Positions 3,293 through 53,052 of a stretch of DNA of 64,000 bases are shown piece after piece. The stretch is from sequence record MT135025.1. One strand, written 5' to 3'. The translations under genes and the position numbers were made by a program. Each line of letters begins with the position of its first letter. Within the stretch, counting starts at the first letter, position 1. A model generated the notes under the pieces. It saw nothing but the letters and a program-made list of their open reading frames with translations. It had not been told where the DNA came from and searched no databases.

Positions 3293-4138
3293 ATGATAGA
3301 TGTTTTGTTAAGATATGACGCAAGGATCATCAATAGCAGAAAGATAGTCATCTATACAGATGAAAATCGTCTCAGTCTTATTGTGAAACTCGCGAAAGAG
3401 CTTAACGGGACGTACAAGAAGTGCGATCCCGGTAGTTCAATTGGTTGTATACAGATGGAAAAATGCAGAGTATACGTCAAACCAACATCTAATCCTGGCA
3501 TCGAGAATGAACGCAATTTCTATACTATTGTAAAGCAACACATTGATTCTGGCTGTACGCGGATTAAAATTGGTGGGCGTCTTATAAAAGGTGTTCAGTC
3601 AATCGAAATGACTGGTCACGACACGAAAAACAATAAGAAAGCCGATATGGTCTTGAAAACAGACAAAGGCGACTTTCCGATTTCAATCAAAAAATCAAAT
3701 GCAGAACGTTGGGCGAGTACTGACGTTATTCACGGCACAGAAGCATGTAAGCTGTTAAATCGCATGGTAGACAAGAAAATCGTCACACTAACCGATTTCT
3801 CAGATGACGGGAAAGTAAAACGACTGAGCCAGCCCATTGCTAGACGACTTAGAGACGATGAGATCAATCACGTTGTATTCGGGTCTGATATTCTCGGGAG
3901 GGGTCTTGTTGTCGTCAATAGCTTTACTCTAGATGATTTTGTATTCAAGCGCGGTACTTTACATATTAGCGGTGAAGTGCTTTTAGATTCGAGTGATGTA
4001 AAAGACACAATTTACCACCCATATATGATGATTAGAAATGATGCATGTCGCCGCTCGAAGGCATTGCCTTATGGTGTACGTGTTGAAGTTGTATTCGAGT
4101 CAAGAATTACTAAAAATACGATTGTTTACGAGGAGTAG
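3293..4138 (+). CDS. Hypothetical protein with PD-(D/E)xK nuclease-like motif
   Basis: KKADMVL..FPISIKK pattern. Confidence 0.5.
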   Translation: MIDVLLRYDARIINSRKIVIYTDENRLSLIVKLAKELNGTYKKCDPGSSIGCIQMEKCRVYVKPTSNPGIENERNFYTIVKQHIDSGCTRIKIGGRLIKGVQSIEMTGHDTKNNKKADMVLKTDKGDFPISIKKSNAERWASTDVIHGTEACKLLNRMVDKKIVTLTDFSDDGKVKRLSQPIARRLRDDEINHVVFGSDILGRGLVVVNSFTLDDFVFKRGTLHISGEVLLDSSDVKDTIYHPYMMIRNDACRRSKALPYGVRVEVVFESRITKNTIVYEE

Positions 4139-5522: not shown

Positions 5523-6581
5523 ATGCAGATTTTGATTGATATACAATATGCCAAAATGCTTCAGCATCGTTTGTTATTGCCAAAAGTGCATAGCAATCGA
5601 CCATTCAAAATAAATGCTCGTTGTCCGATCTGCGGCGACTCAAAAAAGAACAAGTACAAAACTCGTTTCTGGATTAATGAAGTCAAGACGAAAAGCGGTG
5701 AACTTCACTTGCGCTGCTCTTGTTGGAACTGTGACTACAACGAATCGCTGTACACTTTTTTGAAAGATCACGAGCCCGCTCTATTTTCTCAATATCGAGT
5801 TGATCTTTTCAAAGAACGCAACTCACGCGAACGCAAAGAACGCGAGCCTGAACCAGTCGTTGAAAAGAAAGAAGCGACGGTTATCGAGAAAGAACAAGAA
5901 GAACAGCTTTTTTACAACATCACTGCACTGAAAGAAGGTCATGTGATGCACAAGTATCTTGAATCTCGTAAAATACCGAAAGACAAGTGGCATTTGCTTG
6001 GGTTTACTCGCGGTTGGACTACAATGGCGAAGACATTACGCCCCGACTTGTACGAGGGTGAAATCAAGAATGACCACCCGCGTCTTGTAATTCCGATTTA
6101 CAACAAAGACGGTCTGGTGGCAGTTCAAGGTCGTGCGCTGACGAACAAACACGCTCAACGTTATATGACCATCAAAATCGACGATGATTTTGACAAAATC
6201 TATGGTACTGAGCGCATCAACGAAGAAGATCCTGTAATTTTCGTTGAGGGCCCGATTGATAGTTTATTCCTATACAATTGCTGTGCTATAGTAGGTGGAC
6301 AAGTCAGCCCAAACAACGCACCGTATGCTGGTAATCGTATATGGGCGCTTGATAATGAGCCACGACATCCCGACGTTATCAAACGTCTTCAAGTTCTAAT
6401 CAGAGCGGGTGAACGTGTTGTTATTTGGGATAAGCTCCCACCGCAAATCATTGGTAAGAAAGACATCAATGATTTCATCAAAGCTGGCGTATCTGCTGAG
6501 TTCATTCAGCAATACATTTATGAAAATGCCGTTAGTGGTCTAATGGCTACAAATCGACTTAACAGATGGAAGAAAATTTAA
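5523..6581 (+). CDS. 61: DNA primase
   Basis: RCPICGDS..CWNC zinc finger; VEGPIDSLF TOPRIM; DNEPR; KDIND. Confidence 0.97.
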   Translation: MQILIDIQYAKMLQHRLLLPKVHSNRPFKINARCPICGDSKKNKYKTRFWINEVKTKSGELHLRCSCWNCDYNESLYTFLKDHEPALFSQYRVDLFKERNSRERKEREPEPVVEKKEATVIEKEQEEQLFYNITALKEGHVMHKYLESRKIPKDKWHLLGFTRGWTTMAKTLRPDLYEGEIKNDHPRLVIPIYNKDGLVAVQGRALTNKHAQRYMTIKIDDDFDKIYGTERINEEDPVIFVEGPIDSLFLYNCCAIVGGQVSPNNAPYAGNRIWALDNEPRHPDVIKRLQVLIRAGERVVIWDKLPPQIIGKKDINDFIKAGVSAEFIQQYIYENAVSGLMATNRLNRWKKI

Positions 6582-7159
6582 TGAAGATTATTTACCTGCC
6601 GCACTACAAAGAAAACAAGGAACTTGGTCTAAAAGCAATTGAGCCAATCGGTGTTAAAGACCCAGATGACGCGGGTATTGATCTGCGTGCTGCAATTGAA
6701 GAATCAATCGAGTTACAACCGGGTGATTCAGTCGTTATCCCGTCTGGTGTCAAGATTCATATTGGTTCTCACCCGATTCATACAAATCATGTAGAACTTA
6801 GCATGTTTAAGCGTATATTACGCACACTTTGGAATCGAAATGTTGAAGAGTTTCCTGAGCGACAAATGATTGATGAGATAGGCGTATACGGTGCAATTGC
6901 ACCGCGCAGTGGTCTTGGGTTCAAGCACTTCTTGCGTCTAGCAAACACAATCGGGATTATCGACGCGAACTATCAAGGCGAAATCATGATCAAGATTCGC
7001 AACGAAGGCGACGACGTGTTGCACATTGAGCGCGGCGACCGTATCTGTCAATTGATTTTCCATACTTACGTGAAGAACGTGCAGTTTGAAGAAGTTGATG
7101 ATTTCGATGAAGAAACTGACCGCGGTGCTCGTGGGTTTGGTGGTAGCGGGGTGAAATAA
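6581..7159 (+). CDS. dut: Trimeric dUTPase with internal insertion
   Basis: AGIDL, PRSGL, GIIDANYQGEI, GDRICQL, RGARGFGGSG. Confidence 0.95.
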   Translation: MKIIYLPHYKENKELGLKAIEPIGVKDPDDAGIDLRAAIEESIELQPGDSVVIPSGVKIHIGSHPIHTNHVELSMFKRILRTLWNRNVEEFPERQMIDEIGVYGAIAPRSGLGFKHFLRLANTIGIIDANYQGEIMIKIRNEGDDVLHIERGDRICQLIFHTYVKNVQFEEVDDFDEETDRGARGFGGSGVK

Positions 7160-7395
7160 TGCATACACCTATTTCTAGGACTGGTGAAATTCTAGGGTCA
7201 ATGCGTTCTGTGCTCATGGATGAGCGCATTGAAGCTGCTCTTCGCATGGATATTGCACGCGATCAAGAGCAAAAGGAAAAGATGTTGAATTCGAATCGAA
7301 CGATGATTTCGGATATTGACAAGCAACAACGCAGAATCGAATCTAAGCTCGATTTACTACATACATTACTTGACGTGAAGAAGGAAATATCATGA
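7159..7395 (+). CDS. Hypothetical protein
   Basis: Coupled ORF, coiled-coil-like. Confidence 0.7.
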   Translation: MHTPISRTGEILGSMRSVLMDERIEAALRMDIARDQEQKEKMLNSNRTMISDIDKQQRRIESKLDLLHTLLDVKKEIS

Positions 7396-8084
7396 GTGAT
7401 AAACCCGTCTATGACATTCTAATCGACTATGAGGGATTCGACGTGACTCCCGACGCAGCGGTTATCGAACTAGGTGCAGTTGAATTCGAGCACGATTTTA
7501 CTAAAGTTCCCGATTACCAAGAGCTTGTGAAGAACTCGTTTCGCTGTAAGTTTGAGATCAAATCTCAAAAAGGCAAACGCAGCATCAATAAAGCGACTGT
7601 GCAATGGTGGTCTGAGCAGTCTCAAGAAGCTAAAGAAATTCTAATCCCTAGCGCAGAAGACGTGACGGTTGAAGAAGGTCATAAGCTTTTTATCGAGTGG
7701 ATTGAACAAAACACTCGTTACGACGGTCGTTCTCATTTCTACTGCCGTGGCAACAACTACGATATTCCGCTCATGGCTGATTGTTTCCGTTACAGCGGTT
7801 TGCGTCATGCGATCATCGAGCGATTCTGGAAATTCCGTGACGTTCGTACTCGTATTGAAGCATTGATGCTTCAACGCGACATGTGTAAAGTGCCGATTCG
7901 ACGTGATGCAATGCCAGGGTTTATTCACCACAACGGCGTTCACGACTGTGCTAAAGATGCAATGATGCTTATCATGGCAGCGCGTTACGCACTTGACTTA
8001 GAAGATCTGCCCGAGAAAATGGAATGCCATGAAGTATCGGTTGACTTCACTGACGAAGAGAAAGAGGAACTTGGGCTACTATGA
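7392..8084 (+). CDS. dexA: DexA-like 3'-5' exonuclease (DEDDh)
   Basis: IDYE, RGNNYDIP, RDVRT, HNGVHDCAKD. Confidence 0.88.
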   Translation: MSDKPVYDILIDYEGFDVTPDAAVIELGAVEFEHDFTKVPDYQELVKNSFRCKFEIKSQKGKRSINKATVQWWSEQSQEAKEILIPSAEDVTVEEGHKLFIEWIEQNTRYDGRSHFYCRGNNYDIPLMADCFRYSGLRHAIIERFWKFRDVRTRIEALMLQRDMCKVPIRRDAMPGFIHHNGVHDCAKDAMMLIMAARYALDLEDLPEKMECHEVSVDFTDEEKEELGLL

Positions 8085-8843: not shown

Positions 8844-9075
8844 ACTTGGTGACTTCATCGAGGTCACTGAAAGGCTTGACCAAGAGAGTTTTTTTGGTCA
8901 ATTAATTGATATTGCACCGTGTATATGGGCACGTGGTGATTTTCTACGACTTGTCGATGACGCAGGTAATGAAGTTCAAGTGAACACTGTGAACATTGAC
9001 ATGATTAATGGCACTGTTGTGGGCGAAATCATTCGCAACGCCCATGGCTTTATGTATTGTGAGGAAAAGATTTGA
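8830..9075 (+). CDS. Hypothetical protein
   Basis: ORF. Confidence 0.7.
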   Translation: MKQIRLGDFIEVTERLDQESFFGQLIDIAPCIWARGDFLRLVDDAGNEVQVNTVNIDMINGTVVGEIIRNAHGFMYCEEKI

Positions 9076-9518
9076 GCAAAGCATATATTTTTGTGAATCG
9101 CTACTGTAAAGGGATTCAAGCTGGGATTCAAGGCGCACATGCGCTGCTACGACTTGCGCGTAAAGCAGAAAAGCCTATCTTTGACAAGTGGTTAAACGAA
9201 GACGAAACAATTGTGATTCTGTCAGCGTCGGGTCACGATCATCTTGAAGAAATCGAAAAGACGATTCGTGAAATGAATGTTGTGGAAGACATCACGTTTT
9301 TTCAAGAAGAAGGTTTACATCACTCTCTAACGGGTGTAGCATTCATTGGTGACGACACGCTAATGAAAGTTCAAGCCGAAATGAAAGAATGGCGCGAACT
9401 TCGTAAAAATGGCGAAGGTCCGAAGCGTCGAGACTTCGACTCAGATATGTTCTACAAGTACGGTCGAACATATGAACTTGCAAAATACTTAGAGGGGTTT
9501 CATTCTCATCATGGATAA
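9072..9518 (+). CDS. Peptidyl-tRNA hydrolase type 2 (Pth2)-like protein
   Basis: YIFVN..GIQAGIQGAHA..W...TIVILSA..FQE..LTGVAF follows the Pth2 pattern. Confidence 0.5.
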   Translation: MSKAYIFVNRYCKGIQAGIQGAHALLRLARKAEKPIFDKWLNEDETIVILSASGHDHLEEIEKTIREMNVVEDITFFQEEGLHHSLTGVAFIGDDTLMKVQAEMKEWRELRKNGEGPKRRDFDSDMFYKYGRTYELAKYLEGFHSHHG

Positions 9519-9741
9519 CTTAAATCTTAAATTGACTACTGCTTCTCGTTTTGAAGAATTGATGACGCGCCCTGGCGTCATCGTCAAGAACAGCTCTTCG
9601 GGTCCTGAATACATCACGACTGTTTACGATAAAGGCGAGTTAATTGCCGAACGTGTCCTGTACGTATCGCAAGCAGAGCATTTCGAGCTACAACTTCCTG
9701 AAGCAGTAAAAGCAGTTCGAAAGCCTAGTAAACTGCCGTAA
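9511..9741 (+). CDS. Hypothetical protein
   Basis: ORF. Confidence 0.7.
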   Translation: MDNLNLKLTTASRFEELMTRPGVIVKNSSSGPEYITTVYDKGELIAERVLYVSQAEHFELQLPEAVKAVRKPSKLP

Positions 9742-9746
9742 AAACT

Positions 9747-9776
9747 GTTTAACAACTAACTTTGTGAGTGTAATAT
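9747..9776 (+). promoter_or_regulatory. Class B promoter (td)
   Basis: GTTTAA-N18-TAATAT. Confidence 0.6.
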
Positions 9777-9777
9777 T

Positions 9778-9978
9778 ATGAAATCTAAAGGTTTTACTCT
9801 GATCGAATTGATAGTCGTGATTATGATTTTAGGTGTTTTAGCGTCAATCGGCGCAGGTGCATTGGGTTTAGGTCAAACTGCATCGTACACGACTCAACCG
9901 CAATCAGTGACATATGAAATTGACGGTCAGTTGATGCAATGTACTCCTGTGCAATCTGCATGGGACGATGATTTTTAA
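9778..9978 (+). CDS. Type IV prepilin-like mini-protein
   Basis: MKSKG/FTLIELIVVIMILGVLASIG: class III signal peptide with Glu at +5. Confidence 0.85.
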   Translation: MKSKGFTLIELIVVIMILGVLASIGAGALGLGQTASYTTQPQSVTYEIDGQLMQCTPVQSAWDDDF

Positions 9979-9984
9979 AGGTAA

Positions 9985-10887
9985 TTGATGAAAAACTACT
10001 TGCAACTATGTACTGAAATTCTCAACGAAGGTGATTTTCTTGAGAATCGAACAGGCACAAACACTGTTAGCGTGATTTCGCGTGAGCTTCGCTGGGATTT
10101 ATCGAAAGGTTTCCCGTTACTGACGACTAAGAAAATGGCAACTAAAGCCATCTTCGGTGAACTTCTATGGTTCTTGAGTGGTTCGGGACTGATCAGCGAT
10201 TTGCGCAAATATACTGAGCTTTCAGACGAAGATTTCTGCATTTGGCAGCAAAATCTAGACGAGCTAAACGAGCGTGCAAAGAAAGCAGGTATTGTTCGAA
10301 ATGAAGACGATCTCGGTTATGTTTACGGTAAAGTATGGCGTAAGCGTCTGTCTGTGACTGCTGACAAAGAAGTGACTGAGTTCGATCAGATTCATCAATT
10401 GCTGTGCGATATTGCAGCGGTTAAAGAAGATCCGACGCAAAGTGCGCAGCGTCGCATGATAGTTGAAGCATGGGACCCGTACTTCCACACTGAAAGCAAC
10501 TCAGTTGACGTAGCTCTACCGCCGTGTCACTATGGCTTTCAAGTGTTCGTGCGTAATGGTAAGATCAGTCTGAAGTGGAATCAGCGTTCAGTTGACACAT
10601 TCTTGGGTCTGCCGTTCAATATCGCATCGTATGCACTATTGGTTCACATTCTAGCACAGCTAACTGGCTTGAAAGTAGGTGAACTGATTTTCTCTGGTGG
10701 TGATGTTCACATTTATGAAGATCACATTGTGCAGGTACTGAAACAATTGCGACGTACTCCGCGTGAGCTACCGCAAATTCAACTACCTGAATTTGATACG
10801 TTGTCACAATTGTTGACTAAACGTGCAAGCGACTTTGTTGTGTACGATTATGATCCGTACCCAGCACTAAAAGGTAAAATGTCATGA
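9985..10887 (+). CDS. td: Thymidylate synthase (no intron)
   Basis: RTGT, ELLWFLSG, LPPCHY, QRSVDTFLGLPFNIASY, DVHIYEDH. Confidence 0.98.
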   Translation: MMKNYLQLCTEILNEGDFLENRTGTNTVSVISRELRWDLSKGFPLLTTKKMATKAIFGELLWFLSGSGLISDLRKYTELSDEDFCIWQQNLDELNERAKKAGIVRNEDDLGYVYGKVWRKRLSVTADKEVTEFDQIHQLLCDIAAVKEDPTQSAQRRMIVEAWDPYFHTESNSVDVALPPCHYGFQVFVRNGKISLKWNQRSVDTFLGLPFNIASYALLVHILAQLTGLKVGELIFSGGDVHIYEDHIVQVLKQLRRTPRELPQIQLPEFDTLSQLLTKRASDFVVYDYDPYPALKGKMS

Positions 10888-11078
10888 TCAGCAAAACCGA
10901 TTATTTTGAACTGAAAACAGGTACGCCAATCATCGTGATTGAGCGTATTGACACAATCGACGGTGAGCTTCTAAAGCTCCCGTTCAGTAAAGTTGTTGCC
11001 GCAGATGATCCGAATATCAGCGAATCGTTAGCTGACGGTAAAATTCACTATCTTTTTGACTTCGAAATAGGTGAGTAA
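10884..11078 (+). CDS. Hypothetical protein
   Basis: ORF. Confidence 0.7.
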   Translation: MISKTDYFELKTGTPIIVIERIDTIDGELLKLPFSKVVAADDPNISESLADGKIHYLFDFEIGE

Positions 11079-11080
11079 AC

Positions 11081-11287
11081 ATGAACGTTGGTGAGTTCGT
11101 AGAAGGGTTGTTGACATTAATGGTATATGGTATCATTGCAGTTTGTCTTATTCTCGTACTGTCAGTTGGCGGGCTTATCTTCGGAACGTGTCTCATCATT
11201 TCGGGTCATACAATCGCTGGGTGGGTTGTTTCTGTTGTCTCAGCGATTATTTTTGCTTTCATATGCGCATTAATGAGGAATTTGTAA
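11081..11287 (+). CDS. Small membrane protein
   Basis: Two hydrophobic segments. Confidence 0.7.
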   Translation: MNVGEFVEGLLTLMVYGIIAVCLILVLSVGGLIFGTCLIISGHTIAGWVVSVVSAIIFAFICALMRNL

Positions 11288-21005: not shown

Positions 21006-21599
21006 ACTGATAAGAAACAAAAACCAACTCTAATTTTTGACGTAGATGGTGTTCTAATTGATTGGGCAAGCCAGCTACCGTTATTCTGCAAACGCTGCGG
21101 AATCGACCCTGTTCGTGCGCTGAAGCATTTCACAGCGAAAGAACACGTTGACGTACGCGACCTATTCGGCGTTGAACAACGCTCAATTGCATTCGATTTG
21201 CTTGAGAAATACAATCTCGAACATGGCAAATACATGACTGCTTTCCCAGATGCTGTCGAGCACGTACACAAAATCGCCAAAGAGTACAATCTAGTCGCAT
21301 TGACTAAATTCGGTGACACTACAGATCACTGGCTAGTTCGCAAGTTTAATCTTGAGACGTTCTTCCCTGGGTGTTTCAGTGAGTTGATCACAATTCGCGG
21401 TGATGAGAGCAAAGTCGGGTATGTTGCTGCATTACAAGCAGATCATAATGTAGTTGGTTTTATCGACGACCAGCTTGAGAATATTCAAGCAATCGGTCGA
21501 GCAACGAATCTAAAAACGATTCATCTAAACCGCTACGATGAACGCGCTGATGTTCATCACATGTCGAAGCTATTAGACTTTCTTCACGAAAAAGTTTAA
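21003..21599 (+). CDS. 30.2: gp30.2-like HAD-superfamily hydrolase
   Basis: LIFDVDGVLIDW, KFNLETFFPGCFSE, FIDD. Confidence 0.8.
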   Translation: MTDKKQKPTLIFDVDGVLIDWASQLPLFCKRCGIDPVRALKHFTAKEHVDVRDLFGVEQRSIAFDLLEKYNLEHGKYMTAFPDAVEHVHKIAKEYNLVALTKFGDTTDHWLVRKFNLETFFPGCFSELITIRGDESKVGYVAALQADHNVVGFIDDQLENIQAIGRATNLKTIHLNRYDERADVHHMSKLLDFLHEKV

Positions 21600-21623
21600 T
21601 ACAGCAATAACTCATCGTATAAT
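21594..21623 (+). promoter_or_regulatory. Class B promoter (ligase operon)
   Basis: GTTTAA-N18-TATAAT. Confidence 0.65.
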
Positions 21624-27712: not shown

Positions 27713-27763
27713 TTAGTAGAATTAGTGCTTTTAGTAATATTAGAAGTATTAGTAAGATTTGTT
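27713..27763. repeat. 9-bp-period TTAG tandem array
   Basis: TTAG at 27713, 27722, 27731, 27740, 27749; TTTG at 27758. Confidence 0.8.
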
Positions 27764-27790
27764 TAACAAACACCTTGACAGCCGTATAAT
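27761..27790 (+). promoter_or_regulatory. Class B promoter
   Basis: GTTTAA-N18-TATAAT. Confidence 0.65.
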
Positions 27791-31726: not shown

Positions 31727-31984
31727 ATGATTACTGAATACCTACGCAATAATACAGTTCGCGAAATGCTAGATTGCCCTGCTACTTCGCTTGCATTCTG
31801 GTCACAAGAATTCATGATCATCCCTGATGAAGATCTAACTTTTGTTGAAAACGATGAAAACGTTCTAATCAAGATGAACGAAATCGAAGTTGTTGTGCCG
31901 TACAATATGACGCTTGAAGTTCTTGAGCAAATGTTCGGTGACGCACTAAGTGAACATGTTAGAAAGATTAAAGAACGTGTTTAA
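31724..31984 (+). CDS. Hypothetical protein
   Basis: ORF after cassette. Confidence 0.75.
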   Translation: MMITEYLRNNTVREMLDCPATSLAFWSQEFMIIPDEDLTFVENDENVLIKMNEIEVVVPYNMTLEVLEQMFGDALSEHVRKIKERV

Positions 31985-32008
31985 CATCGGTTTATCTCAT
32001 CCTATAAT
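31979..32008 (+). promoter_or_regulatory. Class B promoter (gp47/46 operon)
   Basis: GTTTAA-N18-TATAAT. Confidence 0.65.
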
Positions 32009-37747: not shown

Positions 37748-37777
37748 GTTTAGACCGGTAAATAGCTGTGCTAATAT
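37748..37777 (+). promoter_or_regulatory. Class B promoter (clamp operon)
   Basis: GTTTAG-N18-TAATAT. Confidence 0.6.
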
Positions 37778-53004: not shown

Positions 53005-53052
53005 GTTTAATCTCTCTTGTTTATTGACTATAATTTAAGCATAACAAGAGAG
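53005..53052 (+). promoter_or_regulatory. Class B promoter inside an RBS-sequestering hairpin
   Basis: GTTTAA-N18-TATAAT; ctctcttgtt..aacaagagag. Confidence 0.65.

Follow-up and report, generated by a model that had tools for sequence, protein, structure and literature searches.

A conserved, headless pilin-like protein of KVP40-like vibriophages and the possible purpose of its prepilin signal

Why should a lytic T4-type phage of Vibrio encode a protein that begins like a type IV pilin and ends before a pilin head could form? The question is raised by a 64,000-nucleotide stretch of sequence record MT135025.1 (hereafter the window), in which a 66-amino-acid open reading frame (ORF), here called the mini-pilin, occupies positions 9778..9978 on the + strand (ATG at 9778, TAA at 9976–9978). 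A first reading from the letters alone (the sequence-only reading) had delimited this same ORF, and had proposed that its product is cleaved by the host prepilin peptidase PilD and then poisons or caps host filaments or titrates the peptidase, an interpretation that the present analysis partly supports. Databases already list both the gene and its likeness to pilins; what the present analysis adds is the outline of a phage-only family that is under selection and linked to the thymidylate synthase gene (td), a second conserved module, an argument from the conservation of Glu5, and the geometry of an adjoining promoter-like element. The explanation that we favour, to which we would give roughly a 40% chance, is that the mini-pilin is a PilD-processed, headless pilin analogue whose N-terminal helix docks in the assembly machinery of a host type IV pilus or type II secretion system (T2SS) and blocks or caps it.

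The N-terminus can be fixed precisely. An in-frame stop (9757–9759) precedes the ATG and an alternative start codon is absent, so the leader is exactly MKSKG (M1–G5, 9778..9792, + strand); it ends in Gly(-1), and K4 and G5 are invariant in the family. A class III signal is made up of a hydrophilic leader with Gly at its end and a stretch of about 21 hydrophobic residues that a Glu at position 5 of the mature protein interrupts (PMC4471445), and in the mini-pilin FTLIELIVVIMILGVLASIGAGAL provides ~21 hydrophobic residues after the cleavage site, broken by Glu5. Read in this way, the sequence places cleavage between G5 and F6, the Glu at mature +5 at E10, and the end of the hydrophobic stretch at about residue 29; Kyte–Doolittle values in 19-residue windows are 2.3–2.5 across residues 4–31. 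Two curated profile hidden Markov models (HMMs) score above their cut-offs, namely Pfam N_methyl (PF07963, residues 2–24, E=1.3e-8, 34.5 bits against a gathering score of 21.2) and TIGR02532 (E=4.8e-9, 35.7 bits against 16.3), so that the resemblance goes well beyond chance and the signal is canonical, as the sequence-only reading had it. At five residues MKSKG is one shorter than the quoted range of leader lengths, 6–26 residues (PMC4471445), and it belongs to the short type IVa/T2SS kind of leader, on which PilD/VcpD-type peptidases act. A six-frame translation of the window holds no second motif of the type G-[hydrophobic]-[TSA]-x-x-E. Flp/Tad pilins have a longer leader, a Flp-type processing motif and a TadV-type peptidase; this identity is ruled out by the 5-residue leader, by a cleavage context in which G precedes FTLIE, and by the lack of any match to the Flp family in Pfam and NCBIfam.

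What follows the helix does not resemble a pilin. Whole-protein models of GspG, GspH, PpdD-type and ComG pilins match only the first ~25 residues and stay far below their cut-offs (for the GspG equivalog TIGR01710, 24.7 bits of a required 88.85, over residues 4–28 only; for the PpdD-type equivalog, 25.5 bits against 138), and Pfam finds no Pilin or T2SSG domain in the mini-pilin. AlphaFold2, run with a nine-sequence family alignment, predicts a helix at residues 8–28, a disordered linker and one beta-hairpin (44–48/51–55), with a mean predicted local distance difference test (pLDDT) score of 68 that reaches 92 over helix residues 11–20 and lies at 54–64 over residues 31–60; on this model there is no room for a pilin head. 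A Foldseek comparison of the model with the PDB gave no match with E<2, which is uninformative at this moderate model confidence, and look-alikes in the ESM Atlas (scores of 0.86 with the entire protein and 0.72 with its C-terminal part) are under the tool's reliability level and were counted as no evidence. Type IVa pilins typically have a disulfide-bonded C-terminal region with two Cys. The mini-pilin, for which about 40 residues and no head had been read off the sequence, has 36 residues after the helix, a predicted linker and single hairpin, no head and one Cys, and can be ruled out as a full filament-subunit pilin or pseudopilin.

Four segments thus follow the leader on the + strand. The mature N-terminus, F6–G30 (9793..9867), comprises FTLIE, an alpha1N-like helix with Gly at mature position 14, and a Gly-rich end, as delimited by the HMM matches, the AlphaFold2 model, N-terminal matches in the PDB and the family alignment. 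A variable linker rich in Gly, Ser, Thr and Gln (residues 31–45, 9868..9912) has low pLDDT and a proportion of nonsynonymous differences (pN) of 0.42, the highest of four segments compared. The C-terminal module Y46–V58 (9913..9951), which reads YEIDGQLMQCTPV and is defined by conservation and the AlphaFold2 strands, is a predicted beta-hairpin with a DG turn and a single Cys, Cys55. Last comes a lineage-specific acidic tail, QSAWDDDF (9952..9975). Cleavage between G5 and F6 would leave a mature peptide of 61 residues that carries a net charge of -6 and contains neither Lys nor Arg, for the protein's only two basic residues lie in the leader.

Is so small a gene under selection, and for which of its parts? 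In the survey of related phages that the sequence-only reading had proposed, tblastn recovers the gene intact from 29 Vibrio phage records, among them that of F86, a more distant phage. Pairwise ratios of nonsynonymous to synonymous substitution rates (dN/dS) are 0.08–0.31, in comparisons whose dS runs from 0.5 to >2 and is largely saturated; the exceptions are V07/KVP40, which are near-identical with too few changes, and F86 against OZ195947 (0.54). Synonymous sites in the N-terminal codons (proportion of synonymous differences, pS, 0.54) are as diverged as those elsewhere, which places the constraint on the protein. Judged by these substitutions, the mini-pilin is a genuine, selected protein-coding gene. 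Seven positions (K4, G5, F6, T7, L8, E10 and G19) are invariant in the nine-sequence alignment and unchanged in four further orthologues, and none of 13 family members, at identities as low as ~43%, departs from G-1, F+1 or E+5; the remainder of the helix varies conservatively.

Conservation also marks out the C-terminal module, which the sequence-only reading missed together with its single invariant Cys. It is identical in all Schizotequatrovirus and Mylasvirus orthologues aligned, and differs far less at nonsynonymous than at synonymous sites (pN 0.18 against pS 0.64). In distant members the motif becomes (D/N/Q)G-x-x-x-x-C-T, in which G50, C55 and T56 are invariant; Cys55 is the sole Cys, a second being found only in the tentative member P0029 (below). 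The acidic tail is present in V07/KVP40, ValKK3/VH7D, the OZ195947 group and the contig L013, and absent from nt-1, QD01/VS1, CZ01 and F86. The hairpin module must carry the specific function, and it also leaves room for roles unrelated to pili.

The family so defined has been labelled before, in several ways. The gene is KVP40.0030, annotated 'hypothetical protein, match to PF00114', its orthologues are called 'PulG' in ValKK3 (ORF231) and 'PilE' in QD01 (QD01_029), its UniRef cluster name begins 'Prepilin-type N-terminal cleavage/m...', and it falls in phrog_13280 (E=6e-43), a PHROG of unknown function. The resemblance of ORF231 to pilins was remarked upon, and taken no further, in a screen for virulence genes in ValKK3 (PMC13142089); our literature search found no paper joining KVP40 and 'prepilin', and no functional work on the gene. 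The complete coding sequence, stop included, is thus documented by the ORF itself, the N_methyl and TIGR02532 scores, orthologues, dN/dS and phrog_13280.

Gene order gives the family a second signature, as td lies directly downstream of the mini-pilin in every genome inspected (KVP40, nt-1, ValKK3, QD01, F86, VH7D and CZ01), and more distant syntenic relatives share 43–48% identity. A word-indexed protein search recovered only three close clusters, and an exhaustive profile search was required for distant members; among 1.84 billion representatives it gave 12,189 pilin-type N-terminal matches and only a handful of full-length relatives. These are P0005 (65 aa, 23 contigs including phage genomes of ~253 kb), P0006 (the F86 type), P0009 (66 aa) and P0035 (70 aa, on a 31.7-kb contig whose nearest DNA relatives are KVP40-like), all of which adjoin td or the dexA cluster. 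In the P0035 contig td is split by an I-TevI-like endonuclease gene. In the metagenomic relative L015 (6222–8099) td is in two parts, divided by a GIY-YIG I-TevI-like gene, an arrangement reminiscent of the T4 td intron. P0029 (73 aa, on an N4-like contig nearest an Alteromonas phage) may be another member: it shares the IDG-x-L-x-QCT motif, but tblastn with it found nothing. Two 'full-length' matches in IMG/VR, L019 (119 aa) and L020 (77 aa), are not members, the C-terminal motif being missing. As recovered by these searches, the full-length family is almost confined to genomes of KVP40-like (schizo-T4) phages and related contigs, and its isolated members are phages infecting Vibrio, among them nt-1, QD01, CZ01 and VH1_2019, whose host is V. 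natriegens, a non-pathogenic laboratory species.

Bacteria, by contrast, hold the N-terminal part only. No full-length relative was found in 185,579 bacterial and archaeal species-representative genomes, where the best match, at 77% identity, is to residues 1–26 of an MshA-like orphan pilin (183 aa) from a Vibrio species, and profile matches in the PDB are likewise N-terminal only (Geobacter PilA-N, Vibrio MshA 9lab, PilA 9laa and GspG 5wda). From these partial matches, the alpha1N part looks host-derived and the tail phage-specific.

How the gene is expressed bears on every explanation of it. The 36-nt gap upstream of the mini-pilin contains an early-promoter-like element, GTTTAAC ... TG-TAATAT (9747..9776, + strand), within which TTAACA-16-TAATAT (9749–9776) ends 1 nt before the ATG, the spacing reported by the sequence-only reading, which gave the -10 box a label of its own, 'class B'. 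The same ~30-nt geometry (GTTTA-N19-TAnnAT, both boxes counted; as a pattern, GTTTA, 17–20 nt, TA-n-n-[A/T]-T) occurs nine times in the window (1932–61803), always on the + strand, against 6.1 +/- 2.1 copies over both strands of the shuffled window. Most copies read GTTTAA and TATAAT (a further example is at 21594–21623), and four of them (27761–27790, 31979–32008, 37748–37777 and 53005–53034) are followed ~17–25 nt downstream by a Shine–Dalgarno sequence and an ATG. At the mini-pilin, CTGTTTA and the block 9761–9777 are conserved in eight phages, separated by a spacer that varies; F86, OZ195947 and L013 lack the element, and there the mini-pilin ORF abuts or overlaps the upstream gene. These patterns make it probable that the element is a genuine early-type promoter. 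Transcripts from it would begin near 9783, inside the ORF, and would serve td; an element that ends 1 nt before the ATG cannot serve the mini-pilin, which must be read from longer transcripts arising upstream, as the sequence-only reading had concluded. Two other candidate signals were rejected: a terminator-like hairpin with a T-run at the end of the ORF (9945–9965, + strand), which has z = -0.94 against shuffles and lies in the lineage-specific tail, and the 16-mer TTGTGAGTGTAATATT as a repeated element, whose three matches at <=3 mismatches in the window were equalled by 11 of 100 shuffles.

What, then, might a pilin without a head do? We propose that during infection of Vibrio the mini-pilin would be synthesized from read-through transcripts of the upstream cluster, and that the pre-protein would enter the inner membrane N-in/C-out in prepilin fashion. 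Host PilD/VcpD would cut MKSKG at the G5–F6 bond, removing the only basic residues, and the product would be a 61-residue acidic peptide with an alpha1N-type helix (Phe1, Glu5), a flexible linker and a periplasmic, one-Cys beta-hairpin. The helix could then dock on the assembly platform or on a nascent PilD-dependent filament, at its base or its tip, for which the MSHA pilus, the ChiRP/competence pilus and the Eps T2SS pseudopilus are the candidates. Without an alpha1C helix and a globular domain further polymerization would not be possible, making the peptide a dominant-negative subunit or a cap, and the hairpin and its Cys might supply specificity for a periplasmic partner, perhaps through a mixed disulfide or dimerization, a step on which we can only speculate.

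The argument for docking turns on Glu5. Gly-1 is essential for prepilin cleavage, while Glu5 is not needed for cleavage and is needed for filament assembly; the hydrophobic N-terminal helix serves pilins as their chief interface for assembly (PMC4471445). A charge in a membrane helix is costly, so the invariance of Glu5 argues for an assembly-type interaction rather than for a mere anchor or a peptidase decoy, and with Phe1 and Gly14 it points to engagement of the assembly interface of a PilD-dependent system. The confinement of basic residues to the leader and the predicted mature charge of -6 are as expected of a peptide that could be extracted from the membrane after cleavage; the same arrangement allows processed pilins to be drawn out of the membrane. 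Viruses are known to manipulate type IV filaments, as in the case of PfsE of Pf phage and other phage inhibitors of the type IV pilus (cited in PMC12378983), and the pilins of the archaeal provirus SNJ2 hijack host machinery (PMC12426801).

Several observations weigh against this proposal. The mini-pilin lacks alpha1C and the head, the source of many subunit contacts, and its incorporation could be inefficient. Its N-terminus could not be assigned to one host system, as the scores for MSHA, PilA and T2SS do not discriminate. The C-terminal motif has no known match in Pfam, the ESM Atlas or Foldseek searches, and a partner is not indicated by it. Translation would rely on a weak ribosome-binding site (GAG, 9 nt upstream of the ATG) in a gene that lacks its own promoter, and the literature searched yielded neither a transcriptome nor a proteome for any KVP40-like phage. 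KVP40 adsorbs via OmpK and not via a pilus (PMC13609209), so that phages of its kind would not be kept out by a pilus block, and it is hard to see what a fast lytic phage would gain.

The gene neighbourhood invites a different explanation. The mini-pilin sits in a tightly packed cluster of genes, all in the same direction and mostly of nucleotide metabolism: upstream are a dUTPase (6566–7159), a DexA-like exonuclease (7392–8084), a 148-aa PTH2-like hydrolase (9072–9518, + strand; PTH2 domain 26 bits against a Pfam cut-off of 23) and, between the latter and the mini-pilin, a 76-aa ORF; downstream are td (9985–10887, + strand; PF00303, E=7e-81), the constant neighbour that defines the synteny of the family, and, farther on, a MazG-like gene. 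The PTH2-domain (peptidyl-tRNA hydrolase 2) protein, a 'hydrolase' in the annotation of relatives, is conserved two genes upstream of the mini-pilin, and in ValKK3 a homing endonuclease gene of opposite orientation is inserted immediately upstream of the hydrolase gene (L003, 1551–2201). Another small membrane protein of the cluster is encoded two genes past td (11081–11287, + strand; 68 aa, strongly hydrophobic, phrog_17378, unknown function).

By nucleotide identity the source of the window is a KVP40-like T4-type myovirus (Straboviridae, Schizotequatrovirus), Vibrio phage V07: positions 9000–11000 are 100% identical to V07, 97–99% to KVP40, phi-pp2, PVA8 and others, and 84–88% to ValKK3, VH7D, QD01, VS1 and nt-1. 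At 349,331 bp the V07 record is longer than those of all close relatives (244–250 kb), and may be a concatemeric or over-long assembly.

In such surroundings the class III signal may serve only to target and orient a small acidic hairpin peptide at the periplasmic face of the inner membrane, for a role that concerns neither pili nor the T2SS, such as stopping the genome of superinfecting T4-like phages from entering or blocking their tail lysozyme (in the manner of Imm and Sp) or timing lysis. We regard this, the main rival of the docking explanation, as possible, if doubtful. The mini-pilin is a small gene in a co-directional nucleotide-metabolism cluster (dUTPase, DexA-like, td, MazG-like) behind early-promoter-like elements, the T4 genes imm and sp are also small genes in comparable replication-gene regions, and the most specific conserved element of the mini-pilin, its C-terminal hairpin, is no pilin feature. 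The niche seems open, too, as KVP40-like phages as a group have no Imm or Sp detectable by tblastn, in searches where Vibrio was not among the ten commonest organism names, the tenth entries stood at 10 and 4 records, and at least 28 KVP40-like records exist; this absence is negative evidence only. A plain signal-anchor, however, has no need of the invariant G-F-T-L-x-E, above all of a charged Glu within the helix, and beyond N_methyl and its own phrog_13280 the mini-pilin shows no similarity to Imm, Sp or another family in Pfam and PHROG.

A positive hijack, in which the host machine incorporates the processed peptide at low level, yielding an altered pilus or pseudopilus, or exports a small phage peptide, seems to us improbable. 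We know of no assembled headless subunit with a helix of only 21–24 residues, which counts against this idea; the helix of Geobacter PilA-N is much longer and its PDB match to the mini-pilin is N-terminal only, and the gain for a lytic phage would again be unclear. It does draw on the absence of any basic residue that would hold the cleaved peptide, with its net charge of -6, in the membrane, on the precedent of SNJ2 pilins, which build filaments with host machinery (PMC12426801), and on Glu5, whose invariance fits incorporation as well as blocking.

The weakest variant of the ideas in the sequence-only reading is that the mini-pilin is purely a competitive substrate, flooding PilD and starving all prepilins of processing with no other interaction, and we consider it decidedly improbable. 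One peptidase serves several systems in Vibrio, and the cleavage site is canonical; but Glu5 and the C-terminal hairpin would be unnecessary and yet are invariant, a substrate that is turned over makes a poor inhibitor, and with a weak ribosome-binding site and no promoter to itself the gene is unlikely to be expressed very highly. Finally, a non-functional remnant, that is, a captured 5' fragment of a host pilin gene surviving in the leader of the td transcript, would fit an N-terminus like that of Vibrio pilins and a promoter-like element that would start RNA within the ORF, but is hardly credible given dN/dS of 0.08–0.31 at dS up to >2, an ORF that is unbroken in every one of the 29 Vibrio phage records and also in distant syntenic relatives, and the conservation of a C-terminal motif that is not a pilin's.

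Does the docking of a headless pilin analogue, our preferred explanation, extend beyond this family? PHROGs contain several other pilin-like phage families, short ones included (profiles of 59 and 72 positions). Among loci retrieved with the same query, ORFs of <=90 aa with K/R/N/Q-GFTL(I/L)E made up 15 of 85 in viral contigs (18%) and 4 of 108 in bacterial genomes (4%), an odds ratio of 5.6 (Fisher p=0.0014) that comes from a small, similarity-chosen sample; viral ORFs are in any case generally shorter, and some of those counted may be fragments. The C-terminal tails of the short viral ORFs are unrelated to one another. A different viral mini-pilin family is found on two IMG/VR contigs (L048 and L050, the match beginning at 4001), whose products of 76–82 aa have a class III signal and share a two-Cys tail (…SFGINGxTEVRCIDGYKFVIGEGG…GRGVKC). 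That headless pilins are a recurrent invention of phages is thus a lead. The broader idea, that they are a general phage weapon, chain terminators or caps activated by the host peptidase that shut PilD-dependent filaments (type IV pili, competence pili, T2SS), is in our judgement rather unlikely; were it true, the KVP40 family would be its first tractable example, and short viral class III ORFs with unrelated tails would be its footprint.

Known phage inhibitors of pili bind the ATPase or the platform protein, and a pilin-mimic mechanism would differ from these. Should the mini-pilin be processed by PilD and block or cap a filament, it would rank as the first inhibitor of type IV filament machines to work by mimicking a pilin, and could serve as a tool for dissecting how the platform selects and extracts subunits, a probe of the importance of Glu5 and alpha1N, and a lead for blocking pili or the T2SS in vibrios. 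It would also mean that lytic T4-type phages remodel host surface filaments during a short infection, with a bearing on superinfection, chitin attachment, competence and secretion in marine Vibrio populations. Should the signal be only an anchor, the gene would still be a candidate for the missing Imm/Sp-type exclusion function of KVP40-like phages.

Comparison with known systems helps to place the mini-pilin. With bacterial MshA, PilA and EpsG/GspG it shares the short basic leader ending in Gly, Phe+1, Glu+5, Gly14 and an alpha1N of ~21 residues. It differs from bacterial type IVa pilins and T2SS pseudopilins in having no amphipathic alpha1C and no alpha/beta head, one Cys where bacterial pilins usually have a disulfide pair, and only 61 mature residues, and in being encoded by a lytic phage, apparently away from assembly genes (in the 64-kb window). 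The closest structural parallel is Geobacter PilA-N ('Geopilin domain 1'; 2m7g, 6vk9, 7tgg, 9egp), which gives the best PDB matches to the family profile (E=7e-12), is also 'headless', and in the chain 2m7g also has 61 residues. PilA-N, however, forms a single long helix and has a separate PilA-C protein as its partner. The match to it stops at query residue 30–42 (residues 2–42 at most), and the mini-pilin helix, unlike that of PilA-N, breaks at a Gly-rich stretch after ~24 residues and gives way to a beta-hairpin; no gene for a PilA-C-like partner is adjacent, and these three points rule out a Geobacter-type PilA-N identity.

Among phage proteins, T4 Imm and Sp resemble the predicted mini-pilin in being small envelope proteins whose genes lie in replication-gene regions of a T4-type phage, but they have no sequence similarity to it. 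Imm spans the membrane several times and Sp carries an ordinary signal peptide; a prepilin motif is lacking from both. With the phage inhibitors of pili the analogy that we propose is one of function: to our knowledge, none of PfsE, D3112 Tip and DMS3 Aqs1 is pilin-like, their targets being PilC or PilB, and they come from temperate or filamentous Pseudomonas phages. All three are small phage proteins that switch off the type IV pilus and so exclude other phages (as cited in PMC12378983). As far as our searches reach, a pilin-mimic mechanism would have no described precedent in bacterial viruses. The nearest viral counterparts are PilA1 and PilA2 of SNJ2, which are also encoded by a virus, bear a class III signal and rely on the peptidase and assembly machinery of the host (PMC12426801); these are full-size, filament-building pilins of a temperate archaeal virus, whereas the mini-pilin is a headless protein of a lytic bacterial one.

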